Shown here in pieces: positions 3,301-51,820 of a stretch of 64,000 nt of DNA; positions within the stretch are counted from its first letter, which is position 1; each line of letters begins with the position of its first letter. Source of the stretch: Macrostomum lignano (Eukaryota); the NCBI GenBank assembly GCA_002269645.1, contig NIVC01002693.1, forward strand, positions 1-64,000. The letters are read 5' to 3'. The notes beneath the pieces were generated by a model that worked only from the letters and a program-made list of their open reading frames with translations, was not told where the DNA came from and ran no database searches. The position numbers and the translations under genes are program-made.

Positions 3301-3539
3301 CAAAGGCGTATGAGTAGTTTGCTGGCCATTTTGGAACTTTAGGTTCTGGCGGTGGTCTCCGTGGTGGCGGAAGGGTGGCACGAAGTTCAATCGTTTCGAT
3401 GGGTGCCGAGGGTGTTGGCGCTTGTCTCGGTGGTATCAGTTGCTGTTGTTGGGAGTAGTCGTTTCGTGATTCCACTCGAGTTGGAGTTCGTTGTTGCCGC
3501 AGCACTTGTATAGTGTGCGTTCTGCCGTACCGGATGGTG

Positions 3540-15462: not shown

Positions 15463-17268
15463 ATGCCTCGAAATTTGGACGATTTACAGATCGATAGCGT
15501 TGTGACTGATGGAATAAAAAAGTTTGCAACGCCTCGTAGTTTTAAAGCTTCGGCTCCCATCTTCTGCTACATCGCAGAACGACTAAATTTGAGGAATACC
15601 ATACGCAATCGAGCCATGATGTTCCACTGGATTCGCAAAAGAACAAAAGAAAAAAATGAATTGGCCGGATTGACTGGAACTTTCTCTGAGGGCCGCATTC
15701 CTTTGATTAGTACTCCCCCTAGACCTTCTGAGGGTCACCCTCCTCCGGTTAGCACTCCCCCTAGACCTTCTGAGGGTCACCCTCCTCCGGTTAGCACTCC
15801 CCCTAGACCTTCTGAGGGTCACCCTCCTCCGGTTAGCACTCCCCTAGACCTTCTGAGGGTCACCCTCCTCCGGTTAGCACTCCCCCTAGACCTTCTGAGG
15901 GTCACCCTCCTCCGGTTAGCACTCCCCCTAGACCTTCTGAGGGTCACCCTCCTCCGGTTAGCACTCCCCCTAGACCTTCTGAGGGTCACCCTCCTCCGGT
16001 TAGCACTCCCCCTAGACCTTCTGAGGGTCACCCTCCTCCGGTTAGCACTCCCCTAGACCTTCTGAGGGTCACCCTCCTCCGGTTAGCACTCCCCCTAGAC
16101 CTTCTGAGGGTCACCCTCCTCCGGTTAGCACTCCCCCTAGACCTTCTGAGGGTCACCCTCCTCCGGTTAGCACTCCCCCTAGACCTTCTGAGGGTCACCC
16201 TCCTCCGGTTAGCACTCCCCCTAGACCTTCTGAGGGTCACCCTCCTCCGGTTAGCACTCCCCCTAGACCTTCTGAGGGTCACCCTCCTCCGGTTAGCACT
16301 CCCCCTAGACCTTCTGAGGGTCACCCTCCTCCGGTTAGCACTCCCCCTAGACCTTCTGAGGGTCACCCTCCTCCGGTTAGCACTCCCCCTAGACCTTCTG
16401 AGGGTCACCTTCTGAGGGTGAGTTAAGCACGCAAGAAAATCTATTTAGCTATGTAATTTGATTTTGACGTTTCCCGAATTATTTCATTTTTAGGAAGTCC
16501 GTTTGATTTTGGTTCCCATGTTTACTGGAAGCCATTTTTACCTGGTAGCGATTAACGTATCAGCTAGAAATGTTTACCTCTTCGACTCCTCTACCAGTAA
16601 TATCCGCCAGCAGAATGTGTTGCCCAGAATTGTAGAAAACTGGAAGTAAGAAGCTTTTCCTTTCAACCTTTGACTTCAGATAAGACAATTATGAATGTAA
16701 GGATACACATCCATGTAAGCTTTTCCGAACACCAATTGTAGTGCTTTTCTACGTCTGGCACCAAAAGAAATCTACGAGTATTTTTCACTCAAAGAAAATA
16801 CTACTTTTCGCAGTGGCAGCGCTCCACACACTAAGCAAGACGATTCTTTTAGTTGTGGTGCCTTCGTCTGCTTGTATGCCAGAAGCATAATTCTTGGTAG
16901 GGAGCTACAATATCAGAAAGCAAGCAAAGACTTTCTTGAGAAAGTGCGTTGTTACATATGGAAAGTAATCAGTAACAACTCCGTCGATAGCAACCAAGGT
17001 TCTTGTGCAATTTGTCAAGCAGAAGAGCCGCCAAAAGCAGACGGTGCAGCAACAATTGATTGGGTGAGTTGTAAAATTCTTGTATGTATAAACACCTCTG
17101 TGCCAAATATCCATACACATGTACTCACTTTACCTTTACTTCTTGTACATGCACTACTGGTAGATTGAGTGCTCATTCTGTCTTGACTGGATCCACTGCG
17201 TCTGTGCATCCACAACGCAAGAAGAGGAAAACTTCTGCTGCTCGACCTGCATCAATTTACTCAGCTGA
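15463..17268 (+). CDS. Spliced Ulp1/SENP-like (peptidase C48) cysteine protease + C-terminal PHD finger. Exons ~15463-16417, 16494-16645, 16742-17063, 17164-17268.
   Basis: Three phase-compatible GT-AG introns. Spliced product contains LILVPMFTGSHFYLVAIN...YLFDSS, KQDDSFSCGAFVC, and CAIC...WIECSFCLDWIHCVC...FCCSTC. Two 1-nt deletions in C-runs of the 42-bp repeat (~15841, ~16050) break the frame as assembled. Confidence 0.8.
15711..16409 (+). repeat. 42-bp coding minisatellite (STPPRPSEGHPPPV), ~16.5 copies
   Basis: AGCACTCCCCCTAGACCTTCTGAGGGTCACCCTCCTCCGGTT in tandem. Confidence 0.97.
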
Positions 17269-17410
17269 TCGATTACCATACAAGTCAATGGCCTAACTTT
17301 GTGCAGCATTAAATATGCATGACTATTAGACTATAGTCTAATGATTTAATTAAATGATAAGATTAAAGAGCTAATTGAGTTTCATCTAAATTATAATTTA
17401 TTCAGTGCAA

Positions 17411-20400
17411 ATAAACGCTTAGTGTCTGGGTGAAGTCCTGTATGTCAATTTTCAGCGACAGAGAGCAAGCAGAAGTACTCGAAATCGAATATCAATCTAA
17501 TACATTGCGGAGATAGGAACATCAGTTTTTCTCGAATAGTTCTCGAGCATGAAGCTTTGAGTTCGGTTTGAGTTATGATAAACGCTTAGTGTCTGGGTGA
17601 AGTCCTGTATGTCAATTTTCAGCGACAGAGAGCAAGCAGAAGTACTCGAAATCGAATATCAATCTAATGCATTGTGGAGATAGGAACATCAGTTTTTCTC
17701 GAATAGTTCTCGAGCATGAAGCTTTGAGTTCGGTTTGAGTTATGATAATCGCTTAGTGTCTGGGTGAAGTCCTGTATGTCAATTTTCAGCGACAGAGAGC
17801 AAGCAGAAGTACTCGAAATCGAATATCAATCTAATGCATTGTGGAGATAGGAACATCAGTTTTTCTCGAATAGTTCTCGAGCATGAAGCTTTGAGTTCGG
17901 TTTGAGTTATGATAATCGCTTAGTGTCTGGGTGAAGTCCTGCATGCCAATTTTCAGCGACAGAGAGCAAGCAGAAGTACTCGAAATCGAATATCAATCTA
18001 ATGCATTGTGGAGATAGGAACATCAGTTTTTCTCGAATAGTTCTCGAGCATGAAGCTTTGAGTTCGGTTTGAGTTATGATAAACGCTTAGTGTCTGGGTG
18101 AAGTCCTGCATGTCAATTTTCAGCGACAGAGAGCAAGCAGAAGTACTCGAAATCGAATATCAATCTAATGCATTGTGGAGATAGGAACATCAGTTTTTCT
18201 CGAATAGTTCTCGAGCATGAAGCTTTGAGTTCGGTTTGAGTTATGATAATCGCTTAGTGTCTGGGTGAAGTCCTGCATGTCAATTTTCAGCGACAGAGAG
18301 CAAGCAGAAGTACTCGAAATCGAATATCAATCTAATGCATTGTGGAGATAGGAACATCAGTTTTTCTCGAATAGTTCTCGAGCATGAAGCTTTGAGTTCG
18401 GTTTGAGTTATGATAATCGCTTAGTGTCTGGGTGAAGTCCTGCATGTCAATTTTCAGCGACAGAGAGCAAGCAGAAGTACTCGAAATCGAATATCAATCT
18501 AATACATTGTGGAGATAGGAACATCAGTTTTTCTCGAATAGTTCTCGAGCATGAAGCTTTGAGTTCGGTTTGAGTTATGATAATCGCTTAGTGTCTGGGT
18601 GAAGTCCTGTATGTCAATTTTCAGCGACAGAGAGCAAGCAGAAGTACTCGAAATCGAATATCAATCTAATGCATTGTGGAGATAGGAACATCAGTTTTTC
18701 TCGAATAGTTCTCGAGCATGAAGCTTTGAGTTCGGTTTGAGTTATGATAATCGCTTAGTGTCTGGGTGAAGTCCTGCATGTCAATTTTCAGCGACAGAGA
18801 GCAAGCAGAAGTACTCGAAATCGAATATCAATCTAATGCATTGTGGAGATAGGAACATCAGTTTTTCTCGAATAGTTCTCGAGCATGAAGCTTTGAGTTC
18901 GGTTTGAGTTATGATAATCGCTTAGTGTCTGGGTGAAGTCCTGCATGCAATTTTCAGCGACAGAGAGCAAGCAGAAGTACTCGAAATCGAATATCAATCT
19001 AATGCATTGTGGAGATAGGAACATCAGTTTTTCTCGAATAGTTCTCGAGCATGAAGCTTTGAGTTCGGTTTGAGTTATGATAAACGCTTAGTGTCTGGGT
19101 GAAGTCCTGCATGTCAATTTTCAGCGACAGAGAGCAAGCAGAAGTACTCGAAATCGAATATCAATCTAATGCATTGTGGAGATAGGAACATCAGTTTTTC
19201 TCGAATAGTTCTCGAGCATGAAGCTTTGAGTTCGGTTTGAGTTATGATAATCGCTTAGTGTCTGGGTGAAGTCCTGCATGTCAATTTTCAGCGACAGAGA
19301 GCAAGCAGAAGTACTCGAAATCGAATATCAATCTAATGCATTGTGGAGATAGGAACATCAGTTTTTCTCGAATAGTTCTCGAGCATGAAGCTTTGAGTTC
19401 GGTTTGAGTTATGATAATCGCTTAGTGTCTGGGTGAAGTCCTGCATGTCAATTTTCAGCGACAGAGAGCAAGCAGAAGTACTCGAAATCGAATATCAATC
19501 TAATACATTGTGGAGATAGGAACATCAGTTTTTCTCGAATATTCTCGAGCATGAAGCTTTGAGTTCGGTTTGAGTTATGATAATCGCTTAGTGTCTGGGT
19601 GAAGTCCTGCATGCCAATTTTCAGCGACAGAGAGCAAGCAGAAGTACTCGAAATCGAATATCAATCTAATACATTGTGGAGATAGGAACATCAGTTTTTC
19701 TCGAATATTCTCGAGCATGAAGCTTTGAGTTCGGTTTGAGTTATGATAATCGCTTAGTGTCTGGGTGAAGTCCTGCATGCCAATTTTCAGCGACAGAGAG
19801 CAAGCAGAAGTACTCGAAATCGAATATCAATCTAATACATTGCGGAGATAGGAACATCAGTTTTTCTCGAATAGTTCTCGAGCATGAAGCTTTGAGTTCG
19901 GTTTGAGTTATGATAATCGCTTAGTGTCTGGGTGAAGTCCTGCATGTCAATTTTCAGCGACAGAGAGCAAGCAGAAGTACTCGAAATCGAATATCAATCT
20001 AATGCATTGCGGAGATAGGAACATCAGTTTTTCTCGAATAGTTCTCGAGCATGAAGCTTTGAGTTCGGTTTGAGTTATGATAATCGCTTAGTGTCTGGGT
20101 GAAGTCCTGCATGCAATTTTCAGCGACAGAGAGCAAGCAGAAGTACTCGAAATCGAATATCAATCTAATACATTGCGGAGATAGGAACATCAGTTTTTCT
20201 CGAATAGTTCTCGAGCATGAAGCTTTGAGTTCGGTTTGAGTTATGATAATCGCTTAGTGTCTGGGTGAAGTCCTGCATGTCAATTTTCAGCGACAGAGAG
20301 CAAGCAGAAGTACTCGAAATCGAATATCAATCTAATACATTGCGGAGATAGGAACATCAGTTTTTCTCGAATAGTTCTCGAGCATGAAGCTTTGAGTTCG

Positions 20401-23400
20401 GTTTGAGTTATGATAATCGCTTAGTGTCTGGGTGAAGTCCTGCATGTCAATTTTCAGCGACAGAGAGCAAGCAGAAGTACTCGAAATCGAATATCAATCT
20501 AATGCATTGCGGAGATAGGAACATCAGTTTTTCTCGAATAGTTCTCGAGCATGAAGCTTTGAGTTCGGTTTGAGTTATGATAATCGCTTAGTGTCTGGGT
20601 GAAGTCCTGCATGTCAATTTTCAGCGACAGAGAGCAAGCAGAAGTACTCGAAATCGAATATCAATCTAATACATTGCGGAGATAGGAACATCAGTTTTTC
20701 TCGAATAGTTCTCGAGCATGAAGCTTTGAGTTCGGTTTGAGTTATGATAATCGCTTAGTGTCTGGGTGAAGTCCTGCATGTCAATTTTCAGCGACAGAGA
20801 GCAAGCAGAAGTACTCGAAATCGAATATCAATCTAATACATTGTGGAGATAGGAACATCAGTTTTTCTCGAATAGTTCTCGAGCATGAAGCTTTGAGTTC
20901 GGTTTGAGTTATGATAATCGCTTAGTGTCTGGGTGAAGTCCTGCATGCAATTTTCAGCGACAGAGAGCAAGCAGAAGTACTCGAAATCGAATATCAATCT
21001 AATACATTGCGGAGATAGGAACATCAGTTTTTCTCGAATAGTTCTCGAGCATGAAGCTTTGAGTTCGGTTTGAGTTATGATAATCGCTTAGTGTCTGGGT
21101 GAAGTCCTGCATGTCAATTTTCAGCGACAGAGAGCAAGCAGAAGTACTCGAAATCGAATATCAATCTAATACATTGCGGAGATAGGAACATCAGTTTTTC
21201 TCGAATAGTTCTCGAGCATGAAGCTTTGAGTTCGGTTTGAGTTATGATAATCGCTTAGTGTCTGGGTGAAGTCCTGCATGCCAATTTTCAGCGACAGAGA
21301 GCAAGCAGAAGTACTCGAAATCGAATATCAATCTAATGCATTGTGGAGATAGGAACATCAGTTTTTCTCGAATAGTTCTCGAGCATGAAGCTTTGAGTTC
21401 GGTTTGAGTTATGATAATCGCTTAGTGTCTGGGTGAAGTCCTGCATGTCAATTTTCAGCGACAGAGAGCAAGCAGAAGTACTCGAAATCGAATATCAATC
21501 TAATACATTGCGGAGATAGGAACATCAGTTTTTCTCGAATAGTTCTCGAGCATGAAGCTTTGAGTTCGGTTTGAGTTATGATAATCGCTTAGTGTCTGGG
21601 TGAAGTCCTGCATGCCAATTTTCAGCGACAGAGAGCAAGCAGAAGTACTCGAAATCGAATATCAATCTAATACATTGTGGAGATAGGAACATCAGTTTTT
21701 CTCGAATAGTTCTCGAGCATGAAGCTTTGAGTTCGGTTTGAGTTATGATAATCGCTTAGTGTCTGGGTGAAGTCCTGCATGTCAATTTTCAGCGACAGAG
21801 AGCAAGCAGAAGTACTCGAAATCGAATATCAATCTAATACATTGCGGAGATAGGAACATCAGTTTTTCTCGAATAGTTCTCGAGCATGAAGCTTTGAGTT
21901 CGGTTTGAGTTATGATAATCGCTTAGTGTCTGGGTGAAGTCCTGCATGCCAATTTTCAGCGACAGAGAGCAAGCAGAAGTACTCGAAATCGAATATCAAT
22001 CTAATACATTGCGGAGATAGGAACATCAGTTTTTCTCGAATAGTTCTCGAGCATGAAGCTTTGAGTTCGGTTTGAGTTATGATAATCGCTTAGTGTCTGG
22101 GTGAAGTCCTGCATGTCAATTTTCAGCGACAGAGAGCAAGCAGAAGTACTCGAAATCGAATATCAATCTAATACATTGCGGAGATAGGAACATCAGTTTT
22201 TCTCGAATAGTTCTCGAGCATGAAGCTTTGAGTTCGGTTTGAGTTATGATAATCGCTTAGTGTCTGGGTGAAGTCCTGCATGCAATTTTCAGCGACAGAG
22301 AGCAAGCAGAAGTACTCGAAATCGAATATCAATCTAATGCATTGTGGAGATAGGAACATCAGTTTTTCTCGAATAGTTCTCGAGCATGAAGCTTTGAGTT
22401 CGGTTTGAGTTATGATAATCGCTTAGTGTCTGGGTGAAGTCCTGCATGTCAATTTTCAGCGACAGAGAGCAAGCAGAAGTACTCGAAATCGAATATCAAT
22501 CTAATACATTGCGGAGATAGGAACATCAGTTTTTCTCGAATAGTTCTCGAGCATGAAGCTTTGAGTTCGGTTTGAGTTATGATAATCGCTTAGTGTCTGG
22601 GTGAAGTCCTGCATGCAATTTTCAGCGACAGAGAGCAAGCAGAAGTACTCGAAATCGAATATCAATCTAATACATTGTGGAGATAGGAACATCAGTTTTT
22701 CTCGAATAGTTCTCGAGCATGAAGCTTTGAGTTCGGTTTGAGTTATGATAATCGCTTAGTGTCTGGGTGAAGTCCTGCATGTCAATTTTCAGCGACAGAG
22801 AGCAAGCAGAAGTACTCGAAATCGAATATCAATCTAATACATTGCGGAGATAGGAACATCAGTTTTTCTCGAATAGTTCTCGAGCATGAAGCTTTGAGTT
22901 CGGTTTGAGTTATGATAATCGCTTAGTGTCTGGGTGAAGTCCTGCATGTCAATTTTCAGCGACAGAGAGCAAGCAGAAGTACTCGAAATCGAATATCAAT
23001 CTAATACATTGCGGAGATAGGAACATCAGTTTTTCTCGAATAGTTCTCGAGCATGAAGCTTTGAGTTCGGTTTGAGTTATGATAATCGCTTAGTGTCTGG
23101 GTGAAGTCCTGCATGTCAATTTTCAGCGACAGAGAGCAAGCAGAAGTACTCGAAATCGAATATCAATCTAATACATTGCGGAGATAGGAACATCAGTTTT
23201 TCTCGAATAGTTCTCGAGCATGAAGCTTTGAGTTCGGTTTGAGTTATGATAATCGCTTAGTGTCTGGGTGAAGTCCTGCATGTCAATTTTCAGCGACAGA
23301 GAGCAAGCAGAAGTACTCGAAATCGAATATCAATCTAATACATTGCGGAGATAGGAACATCAGTTTTTCTCGAATAGTTCTCGAGCATGAAGCTTTGAGT

Positions 23401-25874
23401 TCGGTTTGAGTTATGATAATCGCTTAGTGTCTGGGTGAAGTCCTGCATGCCAATTTTCAGCGACAGAGAGCAAGCAGAAGTACTCGAAATCGAATATCAA
23501 TCTAATGCATTGCGGAGATAGGAACATCAGTTTTTCTCGAATAGTTCTCGAGCATGAAGCTTTGAGTTCGGTTTGAGTTATGATAATCGCTTAGTGTCTG
23601 GGTGAAGTCCTGCATGCCAATTTTCAGCGACAGAGAGCAAGCAGAAGTACTCGAAATCGAATATCAATCTAATACATTGTGGAGATAGGAACATCAGTTT
23701 TTCTCGAATAGTTCTCGAGCATGAAGCTTTGAGTTCGGTTTGAGTTATGATAATCGCTTAGTGTCTGGGTGAAGTCCTGCATGTCAATTTTCAGCGACAG
23801 AGAGCAAGCAGAAGTACTCGAAATCGAATATCAATCTAATGCATTGTGGAGATAGGAACATCAGTTTTTCTCGAATAGTTCTCGAGCATGAAGCTTTGAG
23901 TTCGGTTTGAGTTATGATAATCGCTTAGTGTCTGGGTGAAGTCCTGCATGCCAATTTTCAGCGACAGAGAGCAAGCAGAAGTACTCGAAATCGAATATCA
24001 ATCTAATACATTGCGGAGATAGGAACATCAGTTTTTCTCGAATAGTTCTCGAGCATGAAGCTTTGAGTTCGGTTTGAGTTATGATAATCGCTTAGTGTCT
24101 GGGTGAAGTCCTGCATGTCAATTTTCAGCGACAGAGAGCAAGCAGAAGTACTCGAAATCGAATATCAATCTAATACATTGCGGAGATAGGAACATCAGTT
24201 TTTCTCGAATAGTTCTCGAGCATGAAGCTTTGAGTTCGGTTTGAGTTATGATAATCGCTTAGTGTCTGGGTGAAGTCCTGCATGCCAATTTTCAGCGACA
24301 GAGAGCAAGCAGAAGTACTCGAAATCGAATATCAATCTAATGCATTGTGGAGATAGGAACATCAGTTTTTCTCGAATAGTTCTCGAGCATGAAGCTTTGA
24401 GTTCGGTTTGAGTTATGATAATCGCTTAGTGTCTGGGTGAAGTCCTGCATGTCAATTTTCAGCGACAGAGAGCAAGCAGAAGTACTCGAAATCGAATATC
24501 AATCTAATGCATTGTGGAGATAGGAACATCAGTTTTTCTCGAATAGTTCTCGAGCATGAAGCTTTGAGTTCGGTTTGAGTTATGATAAACGCTTAGTGTC
24601 TGGGTGAAGTCCTGCATGTCAATTTTCAGCGACAGAGAGCAAGCAGAAGTACTCGAAATCGAATATCAATCTAATGCATTGTGGAGATAGGAACATCAGT
24701 TTTTCTCGAATAGTTCTCGAGCATGAAGCTTTGAGTTCGGTTTGAGTTATGATAATCGCTTAGTGTCTGGGTGAAGTCCTGCATGTCAATTTTCAGCGAC
24801 AGAGAGCAAGCAGAAGTACTCGAAATCGAATATCAATCTAATACATTGCAGAGATAGGAACATCAGTTTTTCTCGAATAGTTCTCGAGCATGAAGCTTTG
24901 AGTTCGGTTTGAGTTATGATAAACGCTTAGTGTCTGGGTGAAGTCCTGCATGTCAATTTTCAGCGACAGAGAGCAAGCAGAAGTACTCGAAATCGAATAT
25001 CAATCTAATACATTGCGGAGATAGGAACATCAGTTTTTCTCGAATAGTTCTCGAGCATGAAGCTTTGAGTTCGGTTTGAGTTATGATAATCGCTTAGTGT
25101 CTGGGTGAAGTCCTGCATGTCAATTTTCAGCGACAGAGAGCAAGCAGAAGTACTCGAAATCGAATATCAATCTAATACATTGCGGAGATAGGAACATCAG
25201 TTTTTCTCGAATAGTTCTCGAGCATGAAGCTTTGAGTTCGGTTTGAGTTATGATAATCGCTTAGTGTCTGGGTGAAGTCCTGCATGCCAATTTTCAGCGA
25301 CAGAGAGCAAGCAGAAGTACTCGAAATCGAATATCAATCTAATGCATTGTGGAGATAGGAACATCAGTTTTTCTCGAATAGTTCTCGAGCATGAAGCTTT
25401 GAGTTCGGTTTGAGTTATGATAATCGCTTAGTGTCTGGGTGAAGTCCTGCATGTCAATTTTCAGCGACAGAGAGCAAGCAGAAGTACTCGAAATCGAATA
25501 TCAATCTAATACATTGCGGAGATAGGAACATCAGTTTTTCTCGAATAGTTCTCGAGCATGAAGCTTTGAGTTCGGTTTGAGTTATGATAAACGCTTAGTG
25601 TCTGGGTGAAGTCCTGCATGTCAATTTTCAGCGACAGAGAGCAAGCAGAAGTACTCGAAATCGAATATCAATCTAATACATTGCGGAGATCGGAACATCA
25701 GTTTTTCTCGAATAGTTCTCGAGCATGAAGCTTTGAGTTCGGTTTGAGTTATGATAATCGCTTAGTGTCTGGGTGAAGTCCTGCATGTCAATTTTCAGCG
25801 ACAGAGAGCAAGCAGAAGTACTCGAAATCGAATATCAATCTAATACATTGCGGAGATAGGAACATCAGTTTTTT
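17411..25874 (+). repeat. 167-bp satellite, ~50 highly similar copies (right arm)
   Basis: AGTGTCTGGG at 17421, 17588, 17755 and onward; only a few variable sites. Confidence 0.98.
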
Positions 25875-28559
25875 GCAAATTGTAAAAAATCCTTTCTATC
25901 TGTAGCCGTAATTTTTTTCAAGTCGGTTTATCTCGTGGGTGATGTTTGTTCTGTAAAAAATCATAGCGTTTGGTGCTTTAAAAGCAAAGATTTTTGTTAT
26001 TTCCGAAAATCGATCTTGAATATCGCTCGGGGAATCCCTGCATAGGCTTATGCTGCTGCTGCTGCACCCTGAGTTGCAAGTGGGGCAATATATTGGAGCT
26101 TTAAAAAAGTCCGGAAGATGTAGTACTGTCTTTATAACAAATATTTATACAATTTTAGTTATTGTGACATAATTAATGTAACAATTTTTAAAGTGCTTTA
26201 AGAAATTAAATAATAAAATTTAACTGTGCAATCAAGAATTCTACATATACAACACTAAATCCCTACGTGTTTATTAAATTACATGATTAGTTTTGAGTAT
26301 AGTTTGAGTTAACCCTCATTTTGGAGATGCAGACACTCGCTTTAGCACCGGAGGCACGCATTCATTTTAGCAGCGCAGGCAATCATTTCGGTGCCGCAGG
26401 CACTTATTCAAGGACCACTACATACATATACAGTATAGTCCTTGCACTGATCATTTTGTCGCTCCTCTGTATTGAAACAAAATTACTGATTTCCACAACC
26501 GGGTCACAAAAGTTGCGGGAGGACAAAGCACTCGCATGTCCCCTGACAGCTTTTTCTGGAGGGACGTGGCCCCTGAACATCCCGGTGGCGATGCCCCTAG
26601 GACTAGTGTTTAAACTTGGCCGATTTTACATGTACCTCAATGACCATACACTGTATGTAAATAATCTAGCTTATATTATAAGCGGGACTGATGAGGAAGA
26701 AAAGGTACATGTAAGAAGAAGATCAGAGAGAAAAGGAAAGAGAGGGCTTGAGAAGATAGGAAAGAGAAGATACATTAGAGAAGGAGAGGCGAGAGAGGAA
26801 ATCAGGGGGAGCGCACTCAGGGGTGTGGGGTGCCCCCGGCCCTTTAGTTGCATGGCGGAGGCATGAAAAATGACAACAGGGATTATTAAGCGCGTTTATG
26901 ACAAAATATATGTAGAGATCGAGCCACACCCCATCTGTCCGTTTTTAGGTCTTCATGCCCTCTCTGCAGAATCCCCTTCAACAAATTTCTGGTTGCGCTA
27001 ATGGAGGAGATTAAAAGAGAAGAGAAGATCTAGATCTACTGGTAAAGATCAAGGCTTCGCGGCCGGTCCACATCAGGCTGTAGTCTCCTGGCTAGAATTC
27101 CTATAGCTACATTAATTGGTTTAGTCCTGAACTGAAGTGTCGATTTGCATTTTGTAAGCTTCGGGTGTCAATTTCGACATTCGATTGAATGCCCATAGGC
27201 TTTGACAAAATTTATCTGTAATTCCATCTACTGTACATGTACCGCAAAAGAATCTGTATAAAGAATCAAATGCTGCATGTATCTATTAAATCAAGTACAT
27301 TTAGATTCGAATCTGACTCTTACATTTAATGTACGCTCGTGATTATACATTATGAGCCAAATTATCCAGTTTGGGAATCATTACGCTCGTAGTCTAACTG
27401 CTTCGATTCTTGAACCATGCACCGCTTCAGACTCGCTTACATGTGCATATGATTGTTGGCATTTGATGGCCATTGCCATGCTATCGACTCGAAATCGTTA
27501 AATATGTTGTCCCAAAGGCTGCAATTATTGTCCAAATCTTTGTCGAATGATTTCGTTTTTAGCACCGCTGCGAGGACGCGGTCGAGGATCTCCTCAGGCT
27601 CAATTTATTCAGCTGTTGACTCACAATAGTCCTGATCCCCAATCAAAGACCCCCAATCCTGATTCCCAATCCTGGTCCCCATTAAATGACTCCCAATACT
27701 GATCCCCGATCCTGATCCCCAATGCTCATCCCCAATCCTGATCCCTATAAATTCTGATTCCCGATTCTGAGCGCAGGGTCTATACATGAATTTTTTTACT
27801 TTAGCGAGTCAAGTTCATGGTACATGGAATATATGTGGGGAACCTTGACTGATCTCGTAGCTACGTAGCAGACACCTGCATTCCCAACCTGCCCTTTATG
27901 TAACGCACCAACATTATACTCGAACACAGCCAGCGCACTTCTCTCTCACGAGCAAGCTAGAGTAGCAATTGCAGTTTGTGCAGCAGTATTGTTTTCAAAT
28001 ATGCACGATTCCTTCAGTTACTGTTGAATCGCTCGTACAAGCTTTAAAACTGACTATTCAATTAAATGCCTTTGGGGTCCCCACCTCCCCCAGCACTCCG
28101 TCTCCGAGCTCGATTCCACCTCGGTGAGGTTGGGGTCTGAGCTGCCTAGCAACAGCATAAGGGGCCAGAGCTGTCTCTATGCTCATGAGTGCAGTGGCGG
28201 CCCTTTAACTGTCCGTGTGCATCCGAAAACGATTCAGCTCAATTCACAGAGGTGCACAGAGACAGGCATTGATGCTGAGCTCTCGCTATTGTTCTCCATC
28301 TGCTTGCAAGTTTAGCTCTCTGCCAGCCTTCTTTTCTGCTTTTCTTCGTTTCGAGCTTTTCTATAAGAGATGCAGAAGGGGCTTCTTGGAGCGCCTCAGC
28401 TCGGATCGGTCTCAGGCTCAGGTGGACTTCAACTTTCAAAGACCGCATTGGCTTTTTTTGGAGCGGAGAAGCTACAGACACAACTTTACAGTTTTAGTTC
28501 CGAATTCTCACAACACAGCTCGCAAAGAGCAACCGGTGAGTGCCTGTCTCCATGGCTTT

Positions 28560-28623
28560 AGTGACTGTCTGTTTGTGTCTGTCTGTCTGTCTACATGTCT
28601 GTGTGTCTGTCTGTCTGTCTACA

Positions 28624-28684
<61 letters not shown>

Positions 28685-28720
28685 TTCTGTGTGTCTGTCT
28701 GTCTGTCTATCTGTCTGTTG
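28560..28720 (+). repeat. (CTGT)n microsatellite inside predicted 5'-UTR intron 28536-28758
   Basis: CCG|GTGAGT donor and TTCTCAG| acceptor flank the tract in both paralogs. Confidence 0.85.
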
Positions 28721-28884
28721 TACCCAACTATCATTTCAAACCCCTCTTGCATTCTCAGACGCATCTCAATCTCAAGCTTAGCCCAGCAGCTCAGCTCCGT
28801 CAGCACCTCGGCAGCGATCGGGTGACTCAGCCGCCCTTGAGCAGCCGAAGGCAGATCTGCGGCACGCAGGACTCGGGCAGCTCC

Positions 28885-31800
28885 ATGGCTGAGGTGAGCA
28901 CTGAGCAGCCGTCTTTCTATTGTGTTTGCTGTACTGTAGAAATCGTAAAATTGTATTTATCTTCATGAATTATCAAACTCAGTAGATCTGGCTCAGATTT
29001 GACCTTCAATATCACCGCTATTCTCCAGTTTTTCTCGCCTCCCTGTCTTCCGTCATCTTTTCTTCCTCCTCCACAAATATTGGACAGGCTGCTGCAGCCT
29101 GAGAGCCTGAGAATAGCGGGTCTCACAACCGCGCACTGGCAAAGGCGCTCACCATGAACTCGCTGCTCCGTTTTGAACGCAGTGCAAAATTTACTGAATT
29201 TTATTGCGCACTTTGACAGCGCTGCAGACGCAGTTTGCACTGCGCTGTTGCGTCACTCAAAGTTTGTTTGCTCGATTATTGCGCCAGACTTTGACAAAAC
29301 TTTCACAGCCGCGCCTGAGCCAGTGCGAGCTTGATGAAGCTGCTCTGCCGAATCCATAATCGATCCATAAAATGTGCACTGTGCTCTTCTAATACCTCAT
29401 GGCTATAGTTGTAGTTTTTTACTTGCAGTTTCACGCAAACTAAGCCCAATTTCATATTTAAAATTGTGCTTTGTGCTATTGTGCTAATTAGAACTGTGCT
29501 TCATGGTAATCTCGTAAATCTGAAGGCACTCCTTCAGATTATCTAATTAGGCAGTTTTGTCTTGGGATTTGCACTTATTTGGGTCCACTTATTTGGGAAT
29601 ATATGGTCTGAATCCTTGGCTGGGAATCATGCCGCAGTTTCTGTTTTTTGTGTTATGTGCGATGTACTCAACAGCTCTCGCAAAGTTGACAATGACGAGC
29701 ATCTCAGTGGCGCTTTGAGACGTCACGGAGTCGCAGCATTTCAGACCTGCATGATCTAAAAGGGCGATCACGTGACGTCACATCGCATTTCAGGCTCATT
29801 GGTTGTTGACTTAATGTGTAACGTCTTTACTCGATTACAATTTATTATTGTTAAGCTGGTTTTCTGTTCATGAATCCACTATCTCATTGAATGACAATAA
29901 ATATATTTATTGCGTTTATTCAAAATGACTGAATGATTCGGGATCAGAAGTTACTTTGTATATTTAAGTGTTCAAGCTTTCCCGAAGTGCCGGTTTTTGC
30001 AATGGGACATTCATTCCTCTACTAGTGCAAAGAAATTTAAAAGGTTGTGGGACTCTTGTGGCCTTCAGCATCAAGGATGTCAGGTGAACATGAAAGTCAA
30101 TATTTCACAAAGTTCGTCGAGAGACCCAGAGACTCCCACTCGTGAAAGGTGAAAGTCGAACTCAAAATCGAAATGCTTGCTGACTTAACATCTCAAAGTG
30201 TCTGAGGTTGAGCTGGGTGGTACAAGGTCTTTGACATATTTGTTAAGTAGAGCTGAGGAAGCAAAGTAAAAGCGCAATAACCAAAGAAAAGGGGCACCAT
30301 TGATGAGCATCACTCGGTAGCGCCTCATCTCTAGCTGAGAACAAGACGAGCCCGTCGGCGCAGCCAATGGAACAAAGCCGCCACTTCAGTCGGTATCGAC
30401 CTACGACAAATGCCGAACAAAGAAAGGTCTCAAAAATCCTTCATCATTGGCAGGAAAGTCGGTCCTCAGCACCCAGGCAGCAACCCTGACAGATACAGAC
30501 GCAAGCAGACTCGAACTCAATCACCCTGGAGCAACCGAGAGGATACGTCAAATGAGTTCCACATATCGTCTACTCTTGACACAACAACATTACTCGCCAT
30601 TGCCATGATAGCGGAAACCAGATGCTCTGGCACGCTCTAGCAGCAGTTATTCGGCACCTCCACGATTCCGCCTAGCGCAGTGCAGTTATGGGCGGCAGTA
30701 GCGCTGCGGCAGCCTCTTTGTCACTGAGTCAAGAACTAGGGGTCAATGATCGAACAGCAAGCAGACTTCACTATCAGCATCGGTGCTCCGCACTGCAATC
30801 GCGCATTCTGCCATGCACTTTTACTGCCCGTCGGCTTGCGAATTCGGTTGTTACTCTGGTGAATTCGAAACATTCACATTTGACAGGAGTACAGCAATCA
30901 CATTCCTGCACACTTAATAATATCGCTTTAACGAGTCAGTTCGGCGTTGCAATGGAGTTCCTTGTTAATGACCTAACAAGGAGTAATGGCAGGCAGCAAC
31001 ACAACCTTCATTATCTACCCGAGCAAATGTCAAATTCTCCAGCTAGATGCGTTTTGGTTGACGAATGCCCTCAACAAAACAGCACAGACAAGTCCGCAGC
31101 AATGCTCATCGACATGATAGCGGAAAACAGCTGCTCTGCAACCTTTCAGTCACATAGCACGGCACTGAAGACCGAACAAAGCCGAAACGTTTCTATTTTG
31201 CCCTCTGTAATTTACTAATATATCCCCGAGCTTCACTGCCAATTTTATACGCTACAACATACCCTCTAAATATAACAATCTACCCCATCCGCATTTCAGA
31301 GAGCTCTGAGTCCCAGCGAGCCCAGCGAATATGAGGCCTCCCAGACTCTCTACAGGCAGATCAAGCAGGCGGTAGCAGCCGGAGACGAACGGCTCACTGA
31401 TGATCTGCTGTTCCAGGTGTCCGAGAACATCGTCGGACCTGGAGAAGACTTCGCCAAAGGCGTCATTTTTGCTGCAGCTCGGGACAGAGACGGACTGCCG
31501 GTTCTTCGATTACTGGAGATGGGGCACGGGGTCGACATATTTCGGCTGATTGACAGCGATGGCGACTCGGTGACTCACCTGGCAGCGAAGAGTCAGACTG
31601 CGGAGACAATGGAGTTCTTGAAACATCTGCTGCAGGCAGCAGAAGTGGACTGGAACCCATTCGAAGCAAGAGATAGCAGGCAGAAAACAGTGATGCATAA
31701 GGCAGCTGAGAATCACACAGATCATGGATCGACATTCAAATGGCTGATCTTCGAACTCGAGGCAGACTGTCTCACTGACAAAGATGCAGACAATAACACA

Positions 31801-33435
31801 GTCATCCACATTGCGGCTGAGTTCCAGAAGGCGGAATCAATGCAGTTCATCAAAGAGAAGATGAATGGAGTCGAGTGTTTCAAGTTTAGAGGATTCAACA
31901 ACAGGACTGCAGTGCACTGTGCTGCCTGCAATGCTGTGAGCAGCTCAGCACTCGAGTGGCTGGTGAACGAGCTTGGACCAGACTGTCTCACTGACAGAGA
32001 TGCAATCAATGAAACAGCCATCCACCTTGCGGCTGAGGTCCAGAAGGCGGAATCAATGCAGTTCATCAAAGAGAAGATGAATGGAGTCGAGTGTTTCATG
32101 CTGAGAGGAATGCAAAACATGACTGCAGAGCACTGTGCTGCTTGCAATGCTGTGAGCAGCTCAGCACTCGAGTGGCTGGTGAACGAGCTCGAACCAGACT
32201 GTCTCACTGACAGAGATGCTAACAATAACACAGTCATCCACATTGCGGCCATATTCCAGAAGACGGAATCAATGCAGTTCATCAAAGAGAAGATTAATGG
32301 AGTCGAGTGTTTCAAGTTTAGAGGATTCAACAACAGGACTGCAGTGCACTGTGCTGCTTGCAATAAAATGAGCAGCTCAGCACTCGAGTGGCTGGTGAAC
32401 GAGCTCGGACCGGACTGTCTCACTGACAGAGATCAATTTAATGACACAGTCATCCACCTTGCGGCTGAGTTCCAGAAGGCGGAATCAATGCAGTTCATCA
32501 AAGAGAAGATGAATGGAGTCGAGTGTTTCAAGCTGAGAGGAAGTTGCAACACGACTGCAGTGCACTGGGCTGCTTGCAACAAAGTGAGCAGCTCAGCACT
32601 CGAGTGGCTGGTGAACGAGCTCGGACGAGGTTGTCTCACTGAGAGAAATGCAATCAATGAAACATCCATCCACCTTGCGGCTGAGGTCCAGAAGGCAGAA
32701 TCAATGCAGTTCATCAAACAGAAGATGAATGGAGTCGAGTGTTTCAAGCTCAGAGGATGGAACAAAAACACTGCAGTGCACTGTGCTGCTGGAAATACTG
32801 TGAGCAGCTCAGCACTCGAGTGGCTGGTGAACGAGCTCGGACCAGACTGTCTCATTGATAAAGATGCAGATAACTTGACGGTCATCCACATTGCGGCCGT
32901 ATTACAGAAGACGGAATCAATGCAGTTCATCAAAGAAAAGATGAATGGAGTCGAGTGTTTTAAGCTGAGAGATTGTGGCAACATGACTGCAGTGCACCGT
33001 GCTGCTGGAAATACTGTGAGCAGCTCAGCACTCGAGTGGCTGGTGAACGAGCTTGGACCAGACTGTCTCACTGACAGAGATGCAGGCAATGACACAGTCA
33101 TCCACATTGCGGCTGAGTTCCAGAAGACGGAATCAATGCAGTTCATCAAAGAGAAGATGAATGGAGTCGAGTGTTTCAAGCTGAGAGGATGGAAGAACAT
33201 GACTGCAGTGCACTGTGCTGCTTTCAATGCTGTGAGCAGCTCAGCACTCGAGTGGCTGGTGAACGAGCTCGGACCAGACTGTCTTACTGACAGAGATAGC
33301 TCACGTCGGTCAGTTTTATCAATCTGCGAACAATTTCAGTGCAAGCATGTTTTTGATCGACTGTCAAGTTGTGTTCGTACAAGGCGTGCTGTCTCTTTTG
33401 GGGCAATAGCCAACATTTTTAAGTTAAGAAGGTAA
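28885..33435 (+). CDS. Ankyrin-repeat protein, paralog 1: ATGGCTGAG micro-exon (28885-28893) spliced to exon 31300-33435; 7 x 72-aa units (31777-33288)
   Basis: TxxHxAA ankyrin motifs with 216-bp period. Donor GAG|GTGAG and acceptor TTTCAG| are in phase 0 and conserved in paralog 2. Confidence 0.85.
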
Positions 33436-36690: not shown

Positions 36691-37078
36691 TAAAGTTAGC
36701 TACATTTAATACGACCAAAACATACATTTGTGCATCACCTCATTTTCACTGCACACGCTTATTTCACCTTTAACATTTGAGTGAAAACATAACGGAAATG
36801 CACAATGGACTTCTTTAAATCAATCATGACCTGCACAGCAGGCCATACGGGCAGTTGCTTTAGTGATTGGGAGATGGTTTTTGATGCCATAGACATTGTT
36901 CAATCTCTGGATTTTTGGGCCGTTTCGATATGGCCTGCAGTGCAGGCCTTTGGCTTCCAAATGGTTAAAAGTCTGGCCAATAAACCTCGGGCAGAGCACA
37001 TGCATATTGGAGCCGCTTGATCCGTTTGTATGAATATTTCTGAAGTACAACAACAACAACAAAATACGTTGTCAATCA

Positions 37079-38436
37079 AACCTCGCAGGCCGCGCCCCGC
37101 GAGTGGACAACCGAAGCTGTTCAACCGGGTGCTGCTGGCTCGGTTACAGCCTGTGCTGGACCAGTTCCTGCGAACTGAGCAGAACGGGTTCCGCCCACAT
37201 CGCGGCACAGTGACGCAGATCCTAGCCCTCCGCCGCATCATCGAGGAGGCGCGCATCCATCAGTCAAGTCTCGTGGTGATCTTCATTGATTTCCTCAAGG
37301 CCTTCGACTCGCTGGCTCGCGGCGCGCTGCCTCTCGTGCTTCGTGCGTACAATGTACCGGAGCAACTGATTTCCGCCATCATGGCGATGTACCAGGACAC
37401 GACCGCTTCGGTGATGACGCCAGATGGACTGTCAGATCAATTCAGCACGTCGTCAGGCGTGCTGCAGGGTGACACTTTGGCGCCTTTTCTGTTTGTGCTG
37501 GCACTGGACTGGGTGCTGAAAACCGGCCTGCCCAACCTGGATGACGGCTTCCTTTTGAGAAGACGCACGAGTCGGTGGCACCCGGAGAAGCGGCTCTCCG
37601 TTCTCGGCTACGCGGACGACCTCGCGCTACTTTCATCGACGGCTGAAGGTGCCCAGCGGCTGCTTGATGGCCTGATGGCGGCAGCGTCGCGGGTCGGCCT
37701 TAAGCTGAACGCGCGGAAGACGGTAGTGTTCACGGTGCCCTCCGACTTGCCGGCCGAGATCAATTACCGAGACGCTGCCGGGAATGCATTTATGCTTACC
37801 CGCTGCGAGCGCTTTGTGTACCTCGGCGGTTCCGTGCCGGACGTTGCCGACGACCTGAAGAGACGACGAGGACTGGCCTGGGCCGCATTTCGATCTGTGC
37901 GCTCCGTGCTCCAATCTGAGGCCCTGGACGACGGGCTCAAGGCTCGGCTGTTTCAGGCAGTCGTCGAGACTGTCCTGTTGTACAACGCCGAGACTTGGAC
38001 CCTGACGGACGCCTTGGAGAGGCAGCTGGACGCTGCGCATGCGGCAATGCTGCGTGCGGCTTTCGGAGTGCGCAGCGGCCCAGGCAGCGAGACCAATGCC
38101 GCGCTCTACACTAGGGCGCGCCTGACGCGGCCTTCTGACCTGCTGCGCGGGCGGCGACTTCGACTGGCTGGCCACGTCATCCGGTCGGAGGCCCGCTGTC
38201 CTGAGCCGCTACACGACGTGCTGCTGCTCAAGCTGCAGGGACCGCGGAGGCGAGGCCAAGGGCAAACGGTGCGATACCCTAACCGACTTTTGAGTGACGC
38301 TGGCGCCCCGGACCAAGCAGGGGGATGCGACTTCCTGAGGGCAATGGCCCAGAGACGCGCTTTCTGACTGCTCCCCCCTTTCTGGCTACTGCGTGGCCGG
38401 CGGGAGCAGTACCTTGTTGTTGTTGTTGTTGTTGTT
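37079..38436 (+). mobile_element. 5'-truncated RTE-like non-LTR retrotransposon (RT + C-terminus)
   Basis: QNGFRP, FIDFLKAFDS, GVLQGDTLAPFLF, YADD and LLYNAETWTL motifs; (TTG)n tail; 11-bp TSD GTTGTCAATCA at 37068-37078 and 38437-38447. Confidence 0.92.
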
Positions 38437-38444
38437 GTTGTCAA

Positions 38445-39060
38445 TCAGTTAGCAGACAATGTCACAAGGCGCGTTTCAAGGCCTGGGCGCGAACCTAGGC
38501 GGCGCCGCCGGCAGTTGTCCGGGGCGCCGGCATCAGCCAGCAGGCAGTCGACGAAACGCCGAGTACGCGCCTGCCCCCGCCGGTAGGGTGCCTGTAGCGT
38601 CAGTAGCAGCACCTCCTGCACCGGCTGTGAGCAGTACGACTCGGCTCGGATGAACTGGCCTGCCAGCTGGAGTCGCCGACGGCGCAACAGTTCGCTGGGG
38701 CGGGACAGGCCGGTGCGGCGATAGAGTGCCGCATTGGTCACTCGCTCGTAGCCGATCTTGAAGGCGGCGCGCAGCAGGCCAGCGTGCGCCGCATCGACCA
38801 GCTGTTCGAGCGAATCCGTCAGCGTCCAGGTCTCGGCGTTGTACAGCAGGACGGTCTCGATTACCACCTGGAACAACGCCGCCCTCTGGCAGTCGGGCAG
38901 CGCCTCGGACTGCAGGACAACCCTCACGGAACGGAAAGCAGCCCAGGCAAGTCCACGAAGACGTCGCAGGTCCTCGCAAACGTCAGGCACCAGACAGCCG
39001 AGGTTAGACGAACTGCTGACAGCACGGAAGCTTCGTCGCTTGTCCGTCGGCGCCTCGGCA
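38445..39060 (-). mobile_element. Older related RTE-like 3' fragment, interrupted by the plus-strand copy; its (TTG)n tail is at 37048-37062
   Basis: RRLRGLAWAAFRSV...LLYNAETWTLTDSLE is paralogous to the neighbouring ORF. Confidence 0.85.
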
Positions 39061-39654
39061 CAAAAAATAGCAGCTTCGATGAAGTACAGAAAGTGGGGAT
39101 GCTGCGAGTTTAAAACAAAAGCAGAATATTTAAAATCATCAGTTTAGGAGGGGAAAAGGAAAGGCACCGAGGGTGGCATCACGGTGGCAACAGGGAATCC
39201 TGAGGATGGGTGCTGGACTGCCATTTTCATTACTGGGAGAGAGGCGCACATTTTTTGCCCCAAATGCGCAGTCAAGCTATGGCAAAGATTGATTGTAAAA
39301 AGTAAAGTACGATAGTACATAGAGAAATATACGAGAACTATAAATTGGCAAAATAAATAGATTGAGTATGATGAGTAATAGATCAAAATAAATAGAATAA
39401 AAAACAAAAACTGGATAATAAATAAATTGTTACAACAATACAAGAAGGCCTTACCGACATTTAAATGTCAAATAAGATATTTCCAAATAGAATATCACCC
39501 GATAATATAAAACAAAAAAATTAAATAGGTAAGAAATAAACGTTGCGTAGAAAGAGTTACCGCACCGCACAAGGTGACAGAGTCAACAAACAAGTACAAA
39601 CAATGGCAGAGGAGCAGAAAAAACGCAGAGTAGGGAGAGCAAAAATACCTGAAT

Positions 39655-40830
39655 ATGTTAATTGGCAGGTTCGAGCCGACTGCGGCAGAGCAACTCCCGG
39701 AGGCTCCTGCCCTTGGTGTAGGCTGGCAGCACCGGGGCCTCGCAGTGTCGTTCCAGCCGGTCCCTCACCATGGCAACTAGGGCCTCGGATGCTGCACAAC
39801 GGCCAAAATCTCGTTGGCGCCATGCGGAAAACGGGTCCTCAGGACATCAATCAGCTTGGCTTCTTGGCGCTGACGCCGTTCATTGGCCTTCGGTCCTGCG
39901 CCGTCCTGAGTCCACACGCCGGTTAAGGCGAAGTCTGCCAGGCTGTGGCCATCGCTGGTGAAGTGGCGGGCCACCGGAGTGTCGCGGGCGTGTCGGATGT
40001 CGCCGATGTGCGCCAGTATGCGACGCGGATGCTGTTGACGGTCTCGCCGACAAACACAGTGTGGTCGCACCGGCGTTCATTGCGTTGCAGTCGATCCTGG
40101 GACTGATGACGAGTTGGACCGATGTGGCAGCAGATCCGGGGTAGACGGAGGTGAACCTGGCATGCGCCTGGCAGCACTTGCAGAGCCGGGCCGAGTTGCA
40201 CGGCAGGAAGCCGAACTCCCACCGTCTGGTCGGGTAGAAGCCCAGCTCAGTCAGCACGTCGTACTTGATGGTGCGGAGGAAACGCTGGCTGTAGCCTTGG
40301 TGTTGCACCAGATTCGACATCAGCGAGGTGCCTGCTGCGTCGAAGTTGGCCAACCGGGAGCACCGCCGGGCGTACCTGAGGAGCTGGGATTTCACCACGC
40401 CTCGGAAAGTCCACTTAGGATGAAAGGAGCCGTGGTGAATGAGGGCTCGGCTGTCGGTGGGCTTGAAGTACACCCTGCTTGCCAGGCTCTTAATGTGGCC
40501 TTCGCGGTCCCAGAGGACGGTGGTGTCCAGGAAGTTGACCTCTGCGCTGCAGAGTTGAAGCCGGATGTTCGGGTCGAGGGCGTCCAGGTGTTGATGGAAC
40601 TGGGCCAGCTCCGCCTCTGTGCCGCGCCACACGCCGAAGATGTCATCAATGTAGCGAAGCCAAAGGCTGAGCTTCTGCGGGCTGGTCTCCAGGCCTCTCT
40701 GCTCCCAGTAGCCCATGTAGATGTTGCTGTAGCTGGGCGCGAACGACTTCCCCATGGCAGTGCCTTTTACCTACAGGAAGTGCTTGCCATCGAATTGGGA
40801 ACTCGGATTCGTTGCGCTCCAGGTTCAGCT
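39655..40830 (-). mobile_element. 5'-truncated Penelope-like element (RT C-terminus + GIY-YIG endonuclease), frameshifted
   Basis: GTAMGKSFAPSYSNIY, WLRYIDDIF, VNFLDT, YFKPTD and SFHP; FVGET...R..AH...ARHF...H; GANE. Confidence 0.9.

Positions 40831-50809: not shown

Positions 50810-51820
<1,011 letters not shown>

Follow-up and report, generated by a model that had tools for sequence, protein, structure and literature searches.

Hypervariable ankyrin repeat arrays of the flatworm Macrostomum lignano as candidate recognition modules with a homogenised scaffold and a diverse binding face

PRDM9 and the KRAB zinc-finger proteins are animal examples of minisatellite-like coding arrays, which evolve in a concerted manner, change their unit number and are under selection at a few ligand-contact residues. 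The variable lymphocyte receptors (VLRs) of lampreys, which are secreted or membrane-bound, obtain diversity on the concave face of their leucine-rich repeats (LRRs) by cassette recombination, via somatic assembly from flanking cassettes. In the designed ankyrin repeat proteins (DARPins) of Binz et al. from 2003, positions 2, 3, 5, 13, 14, and 33 of the repeat are reportedly randomised. The ANK-N5C library randomises positions 2, 3, 5, 10, 13, and 33, which form one continuous surface of beta-turn 1 and helix 1 in crystal structures (PMC4308713). The ankyrin (ANK), tetratricopeptide (TPR) and WD40 domains of fungal NOD-like receptors (NLRs) of the Podospora HET-e/HNWD type (Dyrka et al., 2014) consist of near-identical DNA units that vary in number and are shuffled, and diversifying or positive selection in their ankyrin repeats acts only on the inner helix and on the beta-hairpin/loop of the concave face (PMC4986451). 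Highly conserved repeats, for which an identity of 85% or more between units over a length of 100 residues or more is required, are found in 0.8% of metazoan ANK/TPR/WD proteins (PMC4986451), and no animal ankyrin counterpart that combines concerted evolution with a diversifying face was found in the literature searched. Here we describe two predicted genes of the flatworm Macrostomum lignano, which are located about 25 kb apart on a stretch of 64,000 nucleotides (contig NIVC01002693.1, positions 1 to 64,000 of the forward strand, assembly GCA_002269645.1), referred to as the window. Paralog 1 and paralog 2 contain arrays of seven and eleven near-identical double ankyrin units, respectively, with variation concentrated at the positions of the canonical binding face. 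Taken as a whole, it is fairly likely that these arrays are germline-encoded, recombination-shuffled recognition modules with a diversity that is selected on the face.

A hypervariable ankyrin array of seven in-frame 216-bp units had been proposed for paralog 1 by a sequence-only reading of this DNA, and this is confirmed by the repeat finder, the open frame, and a permutation test. Tandem Repeats Finder reports a period of 216 with 7.1 copies, 87% matches and no indels at 31763-33297, and 11.1 copies with 94% matches at 57345-59734 in paralog 2. Each unit encodes 72 residues, corresponding to two 36-residue ankyrin repeats, A and B. The assignment to the ankyrin family is solid, with Pfam Ank_2 at E = 5e-42 for paralog 1 and 4e-63 for paralog 2, and an AlphaFold2 model with a continuous solenoid. 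Only ankyrin families were found by Pfam in both proteins, the few other matches being short per-repeat recurrences of which none passes alone. By phmmer, the repeat segment was matched with the canonical sequence DADGDTFLHIA in an ankyrin protein of solved structure, and therefore the position numbers used in the sequence-only reading are the canonical ones. The motif strings it quoted are all present in the quoted order: units 1-7 of paralog 1 carry ADNN/AINE/ANNN/QFND/AINE/ADNL/AGND at A2-A5, EF/EV/IF/EF/EV/VL/EF at A13-14, and GFNNR/GMQNM/GFNNR/GSCNT/GWNKN/DCGNM/GWKNM at B1-5, with C, W or R at B10 and CNA, CNK, GNT or FNA at B13-15. Its list of variable positions, 2, 3, 5, 10, and 13-15, mostly holds and needs correction in detail. 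Hypervariable codons of paralog 1 are A3, A5, A13, B2, B3, B5, B13, and B15, whereas A2, A10, A14, and B10 vary only mildly and B14 is an invariant Asn, the variable site being B15. Among 26 units pooled from three arrays, 36 of the 72 positions are invariant, and the entropy ranking is headed by B2, A13, B3, A5, A3, B5, B15, B13, and A10. Ten face codons, which correspond in both repeats to DARPin positions 2, 3, 5, 13, and 14, had been chosen a priori. Of the pairwise nonsynonymous difference among units, 54% in paralog 1 and 67% in paralog 2 falls on these ten of 72 codons, a concentration reached in 0 of 200,000 permutations for paralog 1 and with p = 5e-6 for paralog 2. As had been stated, the variation is concentrated at those sites of the beta-turn and helix 1 which designed ankyrin libraries randomise. 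Comparisons differing at 2-3 bases make up 42% at the face codons of paralog 1 vs 3.3% elsewhere.

Since the consensus positions of ankyrin repeats are structural and variation is always higher at the others, such a pattern could also arise neutrally if the tandem amplification were very young and its surface residues unconstrained, without any selection for diversity, and the dN/dS of about 0.85 over the whole array (nonsynonymous over synonymous divergence) would fit to that. We regard this explanation as already disfavoured and very improbable, as it does not agree with a three-class test. For this test, 13 M. lignano relatives provided 66 diverged units, and positions with an entropy of at least 2.5 bits among these were regarded as tolerant. 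Relative to scaffold dS, dN is 4.6 (paralog 1) and 8.8 (paralog 2) at face codons, but 0.9 and 1.2, respectively, at the eighteen tolerant codons outside the face, which drops to 0.5-0.6 without B10 and B15, and 0.3 and 0.4 at constrained codons. Tolerance of substitutions off the face thus leaves dN at or below dS. Moreover, unit pairs with 0-2 scaffold differences show 6-11 differences in their face codons, and the same positions vary in two further subfamilies. The Nei-Gojobori estimates give a face dN of 0.58 vs a scaffold dS of 0.126 in paralog 1, and 0.295 vs 0.034 in paralog 2. Parsimony counts on unit trees yield a dN of 3.7-8 times the global dS for B2, B3, A5, A3, B15, B5, and A13 (Poisson p <= 0.004). 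A conservative count of distinct variants at face codons comprises 37 nonsynonymous and 4 synonymous ones, corresponding to a dN/dS of 3.6 against pooled synonymous variation. In per-site binomial (SLAC-type) tests no site is significant, which is due to too few synonymous changes per site and thus to a lack of power.

Several points weigh against reading these values as positive selection. Measured by the 4.6 synonymous sites of the face codons themselves, dN/dS is 1.7 (binomial p = 0.22). A dN/dS above 1 at the face, as expected in the sequence-only reading, thus holds against the scaffold or the array-wide synonymous rate and does not hold against the face codons' own synonymous variants, and it is clear only with the former yardsticks, which concerted evolution may have lowered artificially. 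In addition, the unit trees on which the parsimony counts are based are unreliable under recombination. The variation could therefore be old and shielded from homogenisation, so that the face codons are older rather than faster, and balancing or diversity-maintaining selection would act instead of recurrent positive selection. The value of about 1.7 is in line with this, as are the Nei-Gojobori proportions of synonymous differences (pS), which are 0.50 and 0.16 at face codons vs 0.12 and 0.03 in the scaffold of paralogs 1 and 2, and the recurrence of identical cassettes in several units and in both paralogs. However, the excess of pS at the face results largely from path averaging over multi-base codon differences, and purely synonymous face variants are not significantly enriched (4 observed vs 1.9 expected, p = 0.12). 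An old age of the variation is on balance rather unlikely, and it would still need selection for face diversity, because the tolerant positions outside the face are homogenised; it would change the tempo and leave the conclusion of a recognition surface in place. The robust statement is that a face-specific force keeps the binding face diverse while the rest of the unit, tolerant positions included, is homogenised.

The homogenisation itself is evident both within and between the two genes. In the scaffold, base differences amount to 6% within paralog 1, 2% within paralog 2 and 4% between both, whereas the corresponding values for hypervariable bases are 43, 25, and 39%, so that the proposed concerted evolution of the scaffold is well supported. 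Near-identity of the scaffold even at synonymous sites, which had been claimed as well, applies to paralog 2 (pS 0.033) and to most units of paralog 1 (pS 0.116), but not to units 5 and 6 of paralog 1, where 10-22 of 183 scaffold bases are different from those of the remaining units. Unit 7 of paralog 1 and unit 6 of paralog 2 differ at only 1 of 183 scaffold bases, but at 8 of 33 hypervariable bases (Fisher p = 1e-6). As the single-copy N-terminal regions of the paralogs are 4.5% different and the flanking non-coding DNA about 20%, this closeness indicates that units have been exchanged between the two loci. A recent four-unit duplication of 864 bp gave units 4-7 and 8-11 of paralog 2, with 854 of 864 bases identical. 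Shuffling is also seen below the level of the unit. In paralog 1, the repeat-A cassette AINE...EV is joined to differing repeat-B cassettes in units 2 and 5, GFNNR is used in units 1 and 3, and GNT in units 5 and 6; identical hypervariable cassettes recur in both paralogs, in different combinations. In the M. lignano UniProt model A0A1I8GBD8 (P0172), half A of unit 1 of paralog 2 is followed by the B half of unit 2. UPI0007A303B3 (P0161) contains a third array of at least eight units that shares the scaffold, and the unit numbers of the three M. lignano arrays are thus 7, 11, and at least 8, these arrays being alleles, homeologs or paralogs. UPI0007A303B3 is a chimeric model that is collinear with the window and matches parts of its intron and LINE (long interspersed nuclear element) sequence at 100% identity. 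Its 1760 residues fuse intron sequence, a transposon gag, the ankyrin array, and a LINE reverse transcriptase, which is a chimeric annotation. Adenine-directed mutagenesis as by diversity-generating retroelements was also considered. The variable columns are spread evenly over the bases (A 16/64, C 15/47, G 22/60, T 17/45), and without an adenine bias this retroelement-type mutagenesis is excluded.

It is strongly indicated that the 216-bp coding unit acts as a minisatellite, in which unequal crossing-over together with short gene-conversion tracts alters the number of units, keeps the framework codons near identical within and between paralogs, and also recombines cassettes of half a unit. 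Highly diverse residues, about 8-11 in each unit, are left at positions 2, 3, and 5 of the beta-turn and at positions 10, 13, and 14/15 at the end of helix 1 or in the following loop. The contrast between face and scaffold suggests that selection favours or protects the diversity on the face. Because this face corresponds to the canonical ligand-binding groove of ankyrin proteins, each allele or paralog would present a long, individually patterned binding surface, and the arrays might serve as sensor or adaptor modules for the recognition of variable or fast-evolving protein ligands.

The position of the variable residues was considered on an AlphaFold2 model, which was built from a seven-sequence alignment. 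Paralog 1 is modelled with a mean pLDDT (predicted local distance difference test) of 90 and a pTM (predicted template modelling score) of 0.77 as an uninterrupted solenoid of alternating helix pairs with a three-helix N-terminal cap, and low confidence is confined to residues 694-711 at the C-terminal end. The best Foldseek matches of the model are 24-repeat ankyrin-B, ankyrin-1, NOMPC, TRPA1, latrotoxins, and DARPin fusions. In repeat A, A1-A5 form the turn between two bridging residues and A7-A14 form helix 1. In repeat B, B2-B5 precede a shorter helix 1 (B7-B12), and B13-B18 form the loop that follows it. According to this secondary structure, every variable site is therefore situated either in the turn or where helix 1 ends. 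The variable residues would accordingly share one surface, which is a prediction from canonical ankyrin geometry and the modelled secondary structure rather than from measured coordinates, and this counts as a further reservation. From established ankyrin structural biology, the diverse face can be assumed to be a ligand-binding paratope. A transmembrane or signal segment is absent from the predicted protein (maximum hydropathy of 1.1 in a 19-residue Kyte-Doolittle window), in agreement with what had been noted before.

The parallel with fungal NLR repeats that had been drawn is apt (PMC4986451). Near-identical units, differences in repeat number, shuffling, and variability confined to the face are common to both. 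With regard to unit identity, paralog 2 (mean 90% at the amino acid and 95% at the nucleotide level) lies above the 85% that define highly conserved repeats, and paralog 1 (80 and 88%) does so partly. However, the M. lignano genes are animal genes without NACHT/NB-ARC and without an N-terminal effector, their unit is a 72-residue A/B pair and there is no repeat-induced point mutation (RIP). Furthermore, their relatives carry C-terminal STE kinases or a caspase, whereas the fungal proteins have N-terminal HET, HeLo or PNP domains. The genes of the window are therefore no NLRs, as a NOD domain is missing, yet they probably work like fungal NLR repeats. DARPins and ANK-N5C, in which a fixed framework carries diversity at positions 2, 3, 5, (10), 13, and 14 that forms a continuous paratope (PMC4308713, PMC8683736), are similar, and such a paratope is predicted for the M. 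lignano arrays as well. In comparison with the DARPin set, positions 2, 3, 5, and 13 are variable in both repeat types, A14 weakly and B14 not at all, and B15 and B10 vary additionally. Unlike DARPins, the arrays are natural, consist of 36- instead of 33-residue repeats of two alternating types, and comprise 16-24 repeats instead of 2-3. Moreover, B15 is variable but the equivalent of position 33 is not (Arg or Lys), and Cys and Gly are allowed at variable sites. PRDM9-type arrays may be seen as the nearest animal analogue in evolutionary mode, although PRDM9 and KRAB arrays have a C2H2 zinc finger fold, DNA as ligand, and an established role in recombination or transposon silencing. Lamprey VLRs are similar in that repeat proteins are used for recognition, with diversity on the concave face and recombination of cassettes, but they are built from LRRs instead of ankyrin repeats, and nothing in the M. 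lignano arrays points to somatic rearrangement.

Both genes share the same predicted structure, a first exon with nine coding bases, an intron of 2.4 (paralog 1) or 4.9 kb (paralog 2) and one large exon, all on the forward strand. The span 31300-33435, which had been taken for the gene, is thus the large second exon of a two-exon gene, and 31300 is a splice acceptor and not the gene start. In paralog 1, the coding end of the first exon (28885-28893) reads ATG GCT GAG and is followed by the donor GTGAGC. GCTCCATGGCTGAGGT is found at positions 28880 and 51949 of the window and nowhere else, and GCTCCATGGCTGAG followed by GTGAGC is conserved at 28880-28899 with its second copy at 51949. The non-coding intron (28894-31299, GT...tttcag) is 77-87% identical between the paralogs, with many indels and no ORF (open reading frame) shared with paralog 2. 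The acceptor tttcag before AGA is present in both paralogs, and an in-frame stop precedes it at 31273 in paralog 1. Exon 2 of paralog 1 begins with the N-terminal helical cap and one diverged, non-homogenised double ankyrin unit (31300-31764), a part that is 95.5% identical to paralog 2 at the nucleotide level and about 35% identical to the homogenised units. The seven units, each an ankyrin repeat A plus a repeat B, follow at 31765-33276, and the C-terminal half-repeat cap, the tail, and the TAA stop at 33277-33435. From 31300, the frame is open for 711 codons up to the TAA at 33433-33435, whereas the remaining two frames contain 37 and 38 stops. In paralog 2, the end of the start-codon exon, ATG GCT GAG before GT, lies at 51954-51962, the transposon-enlarged intron at 51963-56879, and exon 2 with the eleven-unit array (57345-59720) at 56880-59825. 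An upstream non-coding exon (50645-50787) is implied by a UniProt model that skips the (TGTC)n microsatellite, as residues 1-52 of A0A1I8GUW5 (P0173) match this region with 97-100% identity in tblastn. The predicted exon junctions are ATGGCTGAG to AGAGCTCTG in paralog 1, where the exon 2 side starts with AGAGCT, and ATGGCTGAG to AGACCTCAG in paralog 2. The resulting proteins of 714 and 984 residues, respectively, are soluble solenoids and consist of the N-terminal helical cap, one diverged double repeat, 7 or 11 near-identical 72-residue units, and a C-terminal cap.

UniProt models were found by an exhaustive HMMER search and cluster look-ups. Two M. lignano models, A0A1I8GBD8 and A0A1I8GUW5, start with MAE/RPQSPSES, and the 9-base first exon is confirmed by these models, because they begin with MAE joined to exon 2. 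A0A1I8GUW5 is identical to spliced MAE plus paralog 2 at 222 of 223 residues, with the sole mismatch at the hypervariable B15. An origin of the window from another species had been considered, given a best match of 48% identity and no transposons in common with two M. lignano loci, but it is overturned by these models, which assign the window to M. lignano. Trans-splicing of a spliced leader had been considered as the source of the start codon, as the M. lignano spliced leader ends in ATG (PMC8629364), which would be in frame with exon 2. The spliced-leader sequence is absent from the window, and the idea is superseded by the conserved ATG GCT GAG exon before GT and the matching UniProt models. 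An Rfam scan and an exact look-up of the window ORF in public assemblies gave no matches. It might also be argued that the arrays are artefacts of mis-assembled repeats or product-less pseudogenes, as repeat arrays are prone to assembly collapse, of which A0A1I8GBD8 may be a case. However, neither reading frame is interrupted over its 2.1 or 2.9 kb, compared with 37-65 stops in the other frames, and the variation respects the codon structure. In addition, an independent assembly provides the nearly identical model of paralog 2 and the third array with the same scaffold. The unique N-terminal part, with a dN/dS of 0.47 between the paralogs, is under purifying selection, which speaks against pseudogenes. 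Artefacts or dead genes are therefore hardly credible.

Significant full-length relatives of the two proteins are overwhelmingly from M. lignano; matches 1-13 all belong to this species and are followed by generic ankyrin scores. HMMER yields 44 representatives at E <= 1e-30. The closest full-length relative, P0001, is ankyrin-only and single-exon (E = 1.4e-286, 48% identity over 99% of the query). Homology in the family (E down to 1e-286) covers both the N-terminal cap and the A/B double unit of 72 residues, the ankyrin part of the ANK/STE-kinase and ANK/caspase proteins being single-exon as well, but most relatives have diverged and not homogenised units. Many of them carry a C-terminal kinase, for which the best matches with solved structures are MAP3K2, ASK1, and TNIK, i.e. 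the STE group. In A0A1I8F2E4 (P0019) of M. lignano, an array of near-identical units is combined with a caspase domain with the motif QACRG (Peptidase_C14, E = 1.3e-24). This fusion comes from a gene-model set that also holds the clearly chimeric UPI0007A303B3, which counts as a reservation. Ankyrin-prodomain caspases have been described as an innovation of the platyhelminths, a phylum that lost FADD and DED-caspases (PMC11463336). In a recent survey, ANK-caspases were found in parasitic flatworms only, with a single annelid exception, and M. lignano was listed with a kinase-prodomain caspase. If it is not chimeric, A0A1I8F2E4 would add a free-living flatworm to the species with ANK-caspases. 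Hypervariability is seen beyond the genes of the window, in kinase-fused and caspase-fused relatives. In a kinase-fused subfamily with eight near-identical units, A3, B3, A13, B2, and A2 are most variable, and in the caspase-fused protein B10, A5, B2, B13, A13, and A14. The gene of the kinase-fused P0006 (M. lignano NIVC01002760.1) has a 213-bp coding array at 10417-11137, in which two units differ at 6 bases, all in codons A2-A4 (CAATGCGAT vs TCTAGAGGT), and at 0 of the remaining 204 bases. This 9-base patch with six substitutions looks like a patch replacement (micro-conversion) and not like independent point mutations.

For the window genes themselves, an effector domain had been reported as missing, which is right for both of them, as their ORFs terminate directly after the ankyrin C-cap, but does not extend to the family with its STE-group kinases and, in one model, a caspase. 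Kinase or caspase sequences are not found anywhere in the window, where tblastn with two kinase domains gave nothing at E <= 1, and Pfam detects no NACHT, TIR or Death domains. A hidden effector exon was rejected, since no kinase or further ankyrin sequence is present elsewhere in the window, and the upstream conserved blocks are indel-rich and share no ORFs. Because relatives fuse such arrays to STE-group (MAP3K-like) kinases or to a caspase, it is assumed that the ankyrin-only proteins most likely belong to stress, cell-death or innate-immunity-like signalling, where they might be adaptors, decoys or regulators in trans. By analogy with the effector domains of these relatives, a stress, cell-death or immune-like role of the window proteins is thus suggested. 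To our knowledge, flatworms are without several classical innate-immune and extrinsic-apoptosis components. More tentatively, and with considerable doubt, one could think of the hypervariable ankyrin arrays in Macrostomum, perhaps in flatworms, as an intracellular repertoire for non-self or danger that is wired to stress-kinase or cell-death effectors in cis (ANK-kinase, ANK-caspase) or in trans, an animal counterpart of fungal NLR sensors without a NOD domain. The modules might also diversify for reasons other than pathogens, driven by sexual conflict or sperm-egg interaction, by transposon-encoded proteins or by co-evolving paralogous kinases or caspases. Reproduction-related genes of Macrostomum evolve fast, the two genes are located in a transposon- and satellite-dense region, and the missing NACHT, TIR, and Death domains would fit as well. 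On the other hand, a secreted seminal role is unlikely without a signal peptide, and a role in stress or death signalling is suggested by sister arrays that are fused to MAP3K-like kinases and to a caspase. Neither argument is decisive, and we consider a non-pathogen driver to be unlikely, though by no means far-fetched. Should shuffled recognition modules be the correct explanation, the arrays would represent a natural 'DARPin library', i.e. an animal family with a fixed ankyrin framework in which only the paratope is diversified, and the mode of concerted evolution plus diversifying selection of fungal NLR repeats and PRDM9 would be extended to metazoan ankyrin proteins. They would also be a candidate for how flatworms sense variable ligands via arrays linked to MAP3K-like kinases or caspases. 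As M. lignano is tractable by transgenesis and RNA interference (RNAi), this is directly testable.

The surroundings of the two genes in the window are rich in repeats. A 13-base satellite (AATCCTGATCCCC) lies upstream of both, with 9 copies at 27630-27745 and about 540 copies over 7 kb at 42962-49986. A (CTGT)n/(TGTC)n microsatellite also precedes both genes (28565-28718 and 50841-51819), in the intron of the 5' untranslated region. The shared satellite and microsatellite indicate a segmental duplication of at least 6 kb, after which the satellites expanded unequally. The intron of paralog 2 contains transposon sequence at 54214-56675 that is not in paralog 1, including a gag-like DUF1759 ORF (54876-55784, + strand) and an ORF for a PIF/Harbinger DDE_Tnp_4 transposase fragment (55876-56424, - strand). 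Downstream of paralog 1, LINE-type reverse-transcriptase ORFs are present on both strands at 37030-40755, and the same LINE follows the ankyrin array in UPI0007A303B3, with up to 100% identity over 155 residues. Antisense ORFs of 139-264 residues run through both arrays on the - strand (31722-33227 and 57398-59773), which are most simply a by-product of a unit without stops in one antisense frame. A Foldback-like element extends over 14044-25950, with inverted terminal arms that consist of a 167-bp subrepeat. The left arm (14121-14805) has 4 copies and the right arm (17411-25873) about 51, and the arms are 99% complementary, including unique termini of about 70 bases. The 2.6-kb centre of the element contains a 42-bp repeat array (15707-16409) and an ORF at 15463-16056. 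Finally, a pair of long ORFs that resembles a long terminal repeat (LTR) retrotransposon occupies 1292-8114 on the - strand. One of them encodes a 924-residue protease/reverse transcriptase/RNase H protein, and the other one, with 1191 residues, has two gag zinc knuckles and, after them, a hydrophobic segment and a long mucin-like tail rich in Thr and Pro, a composition that is unusual for a gag protein.

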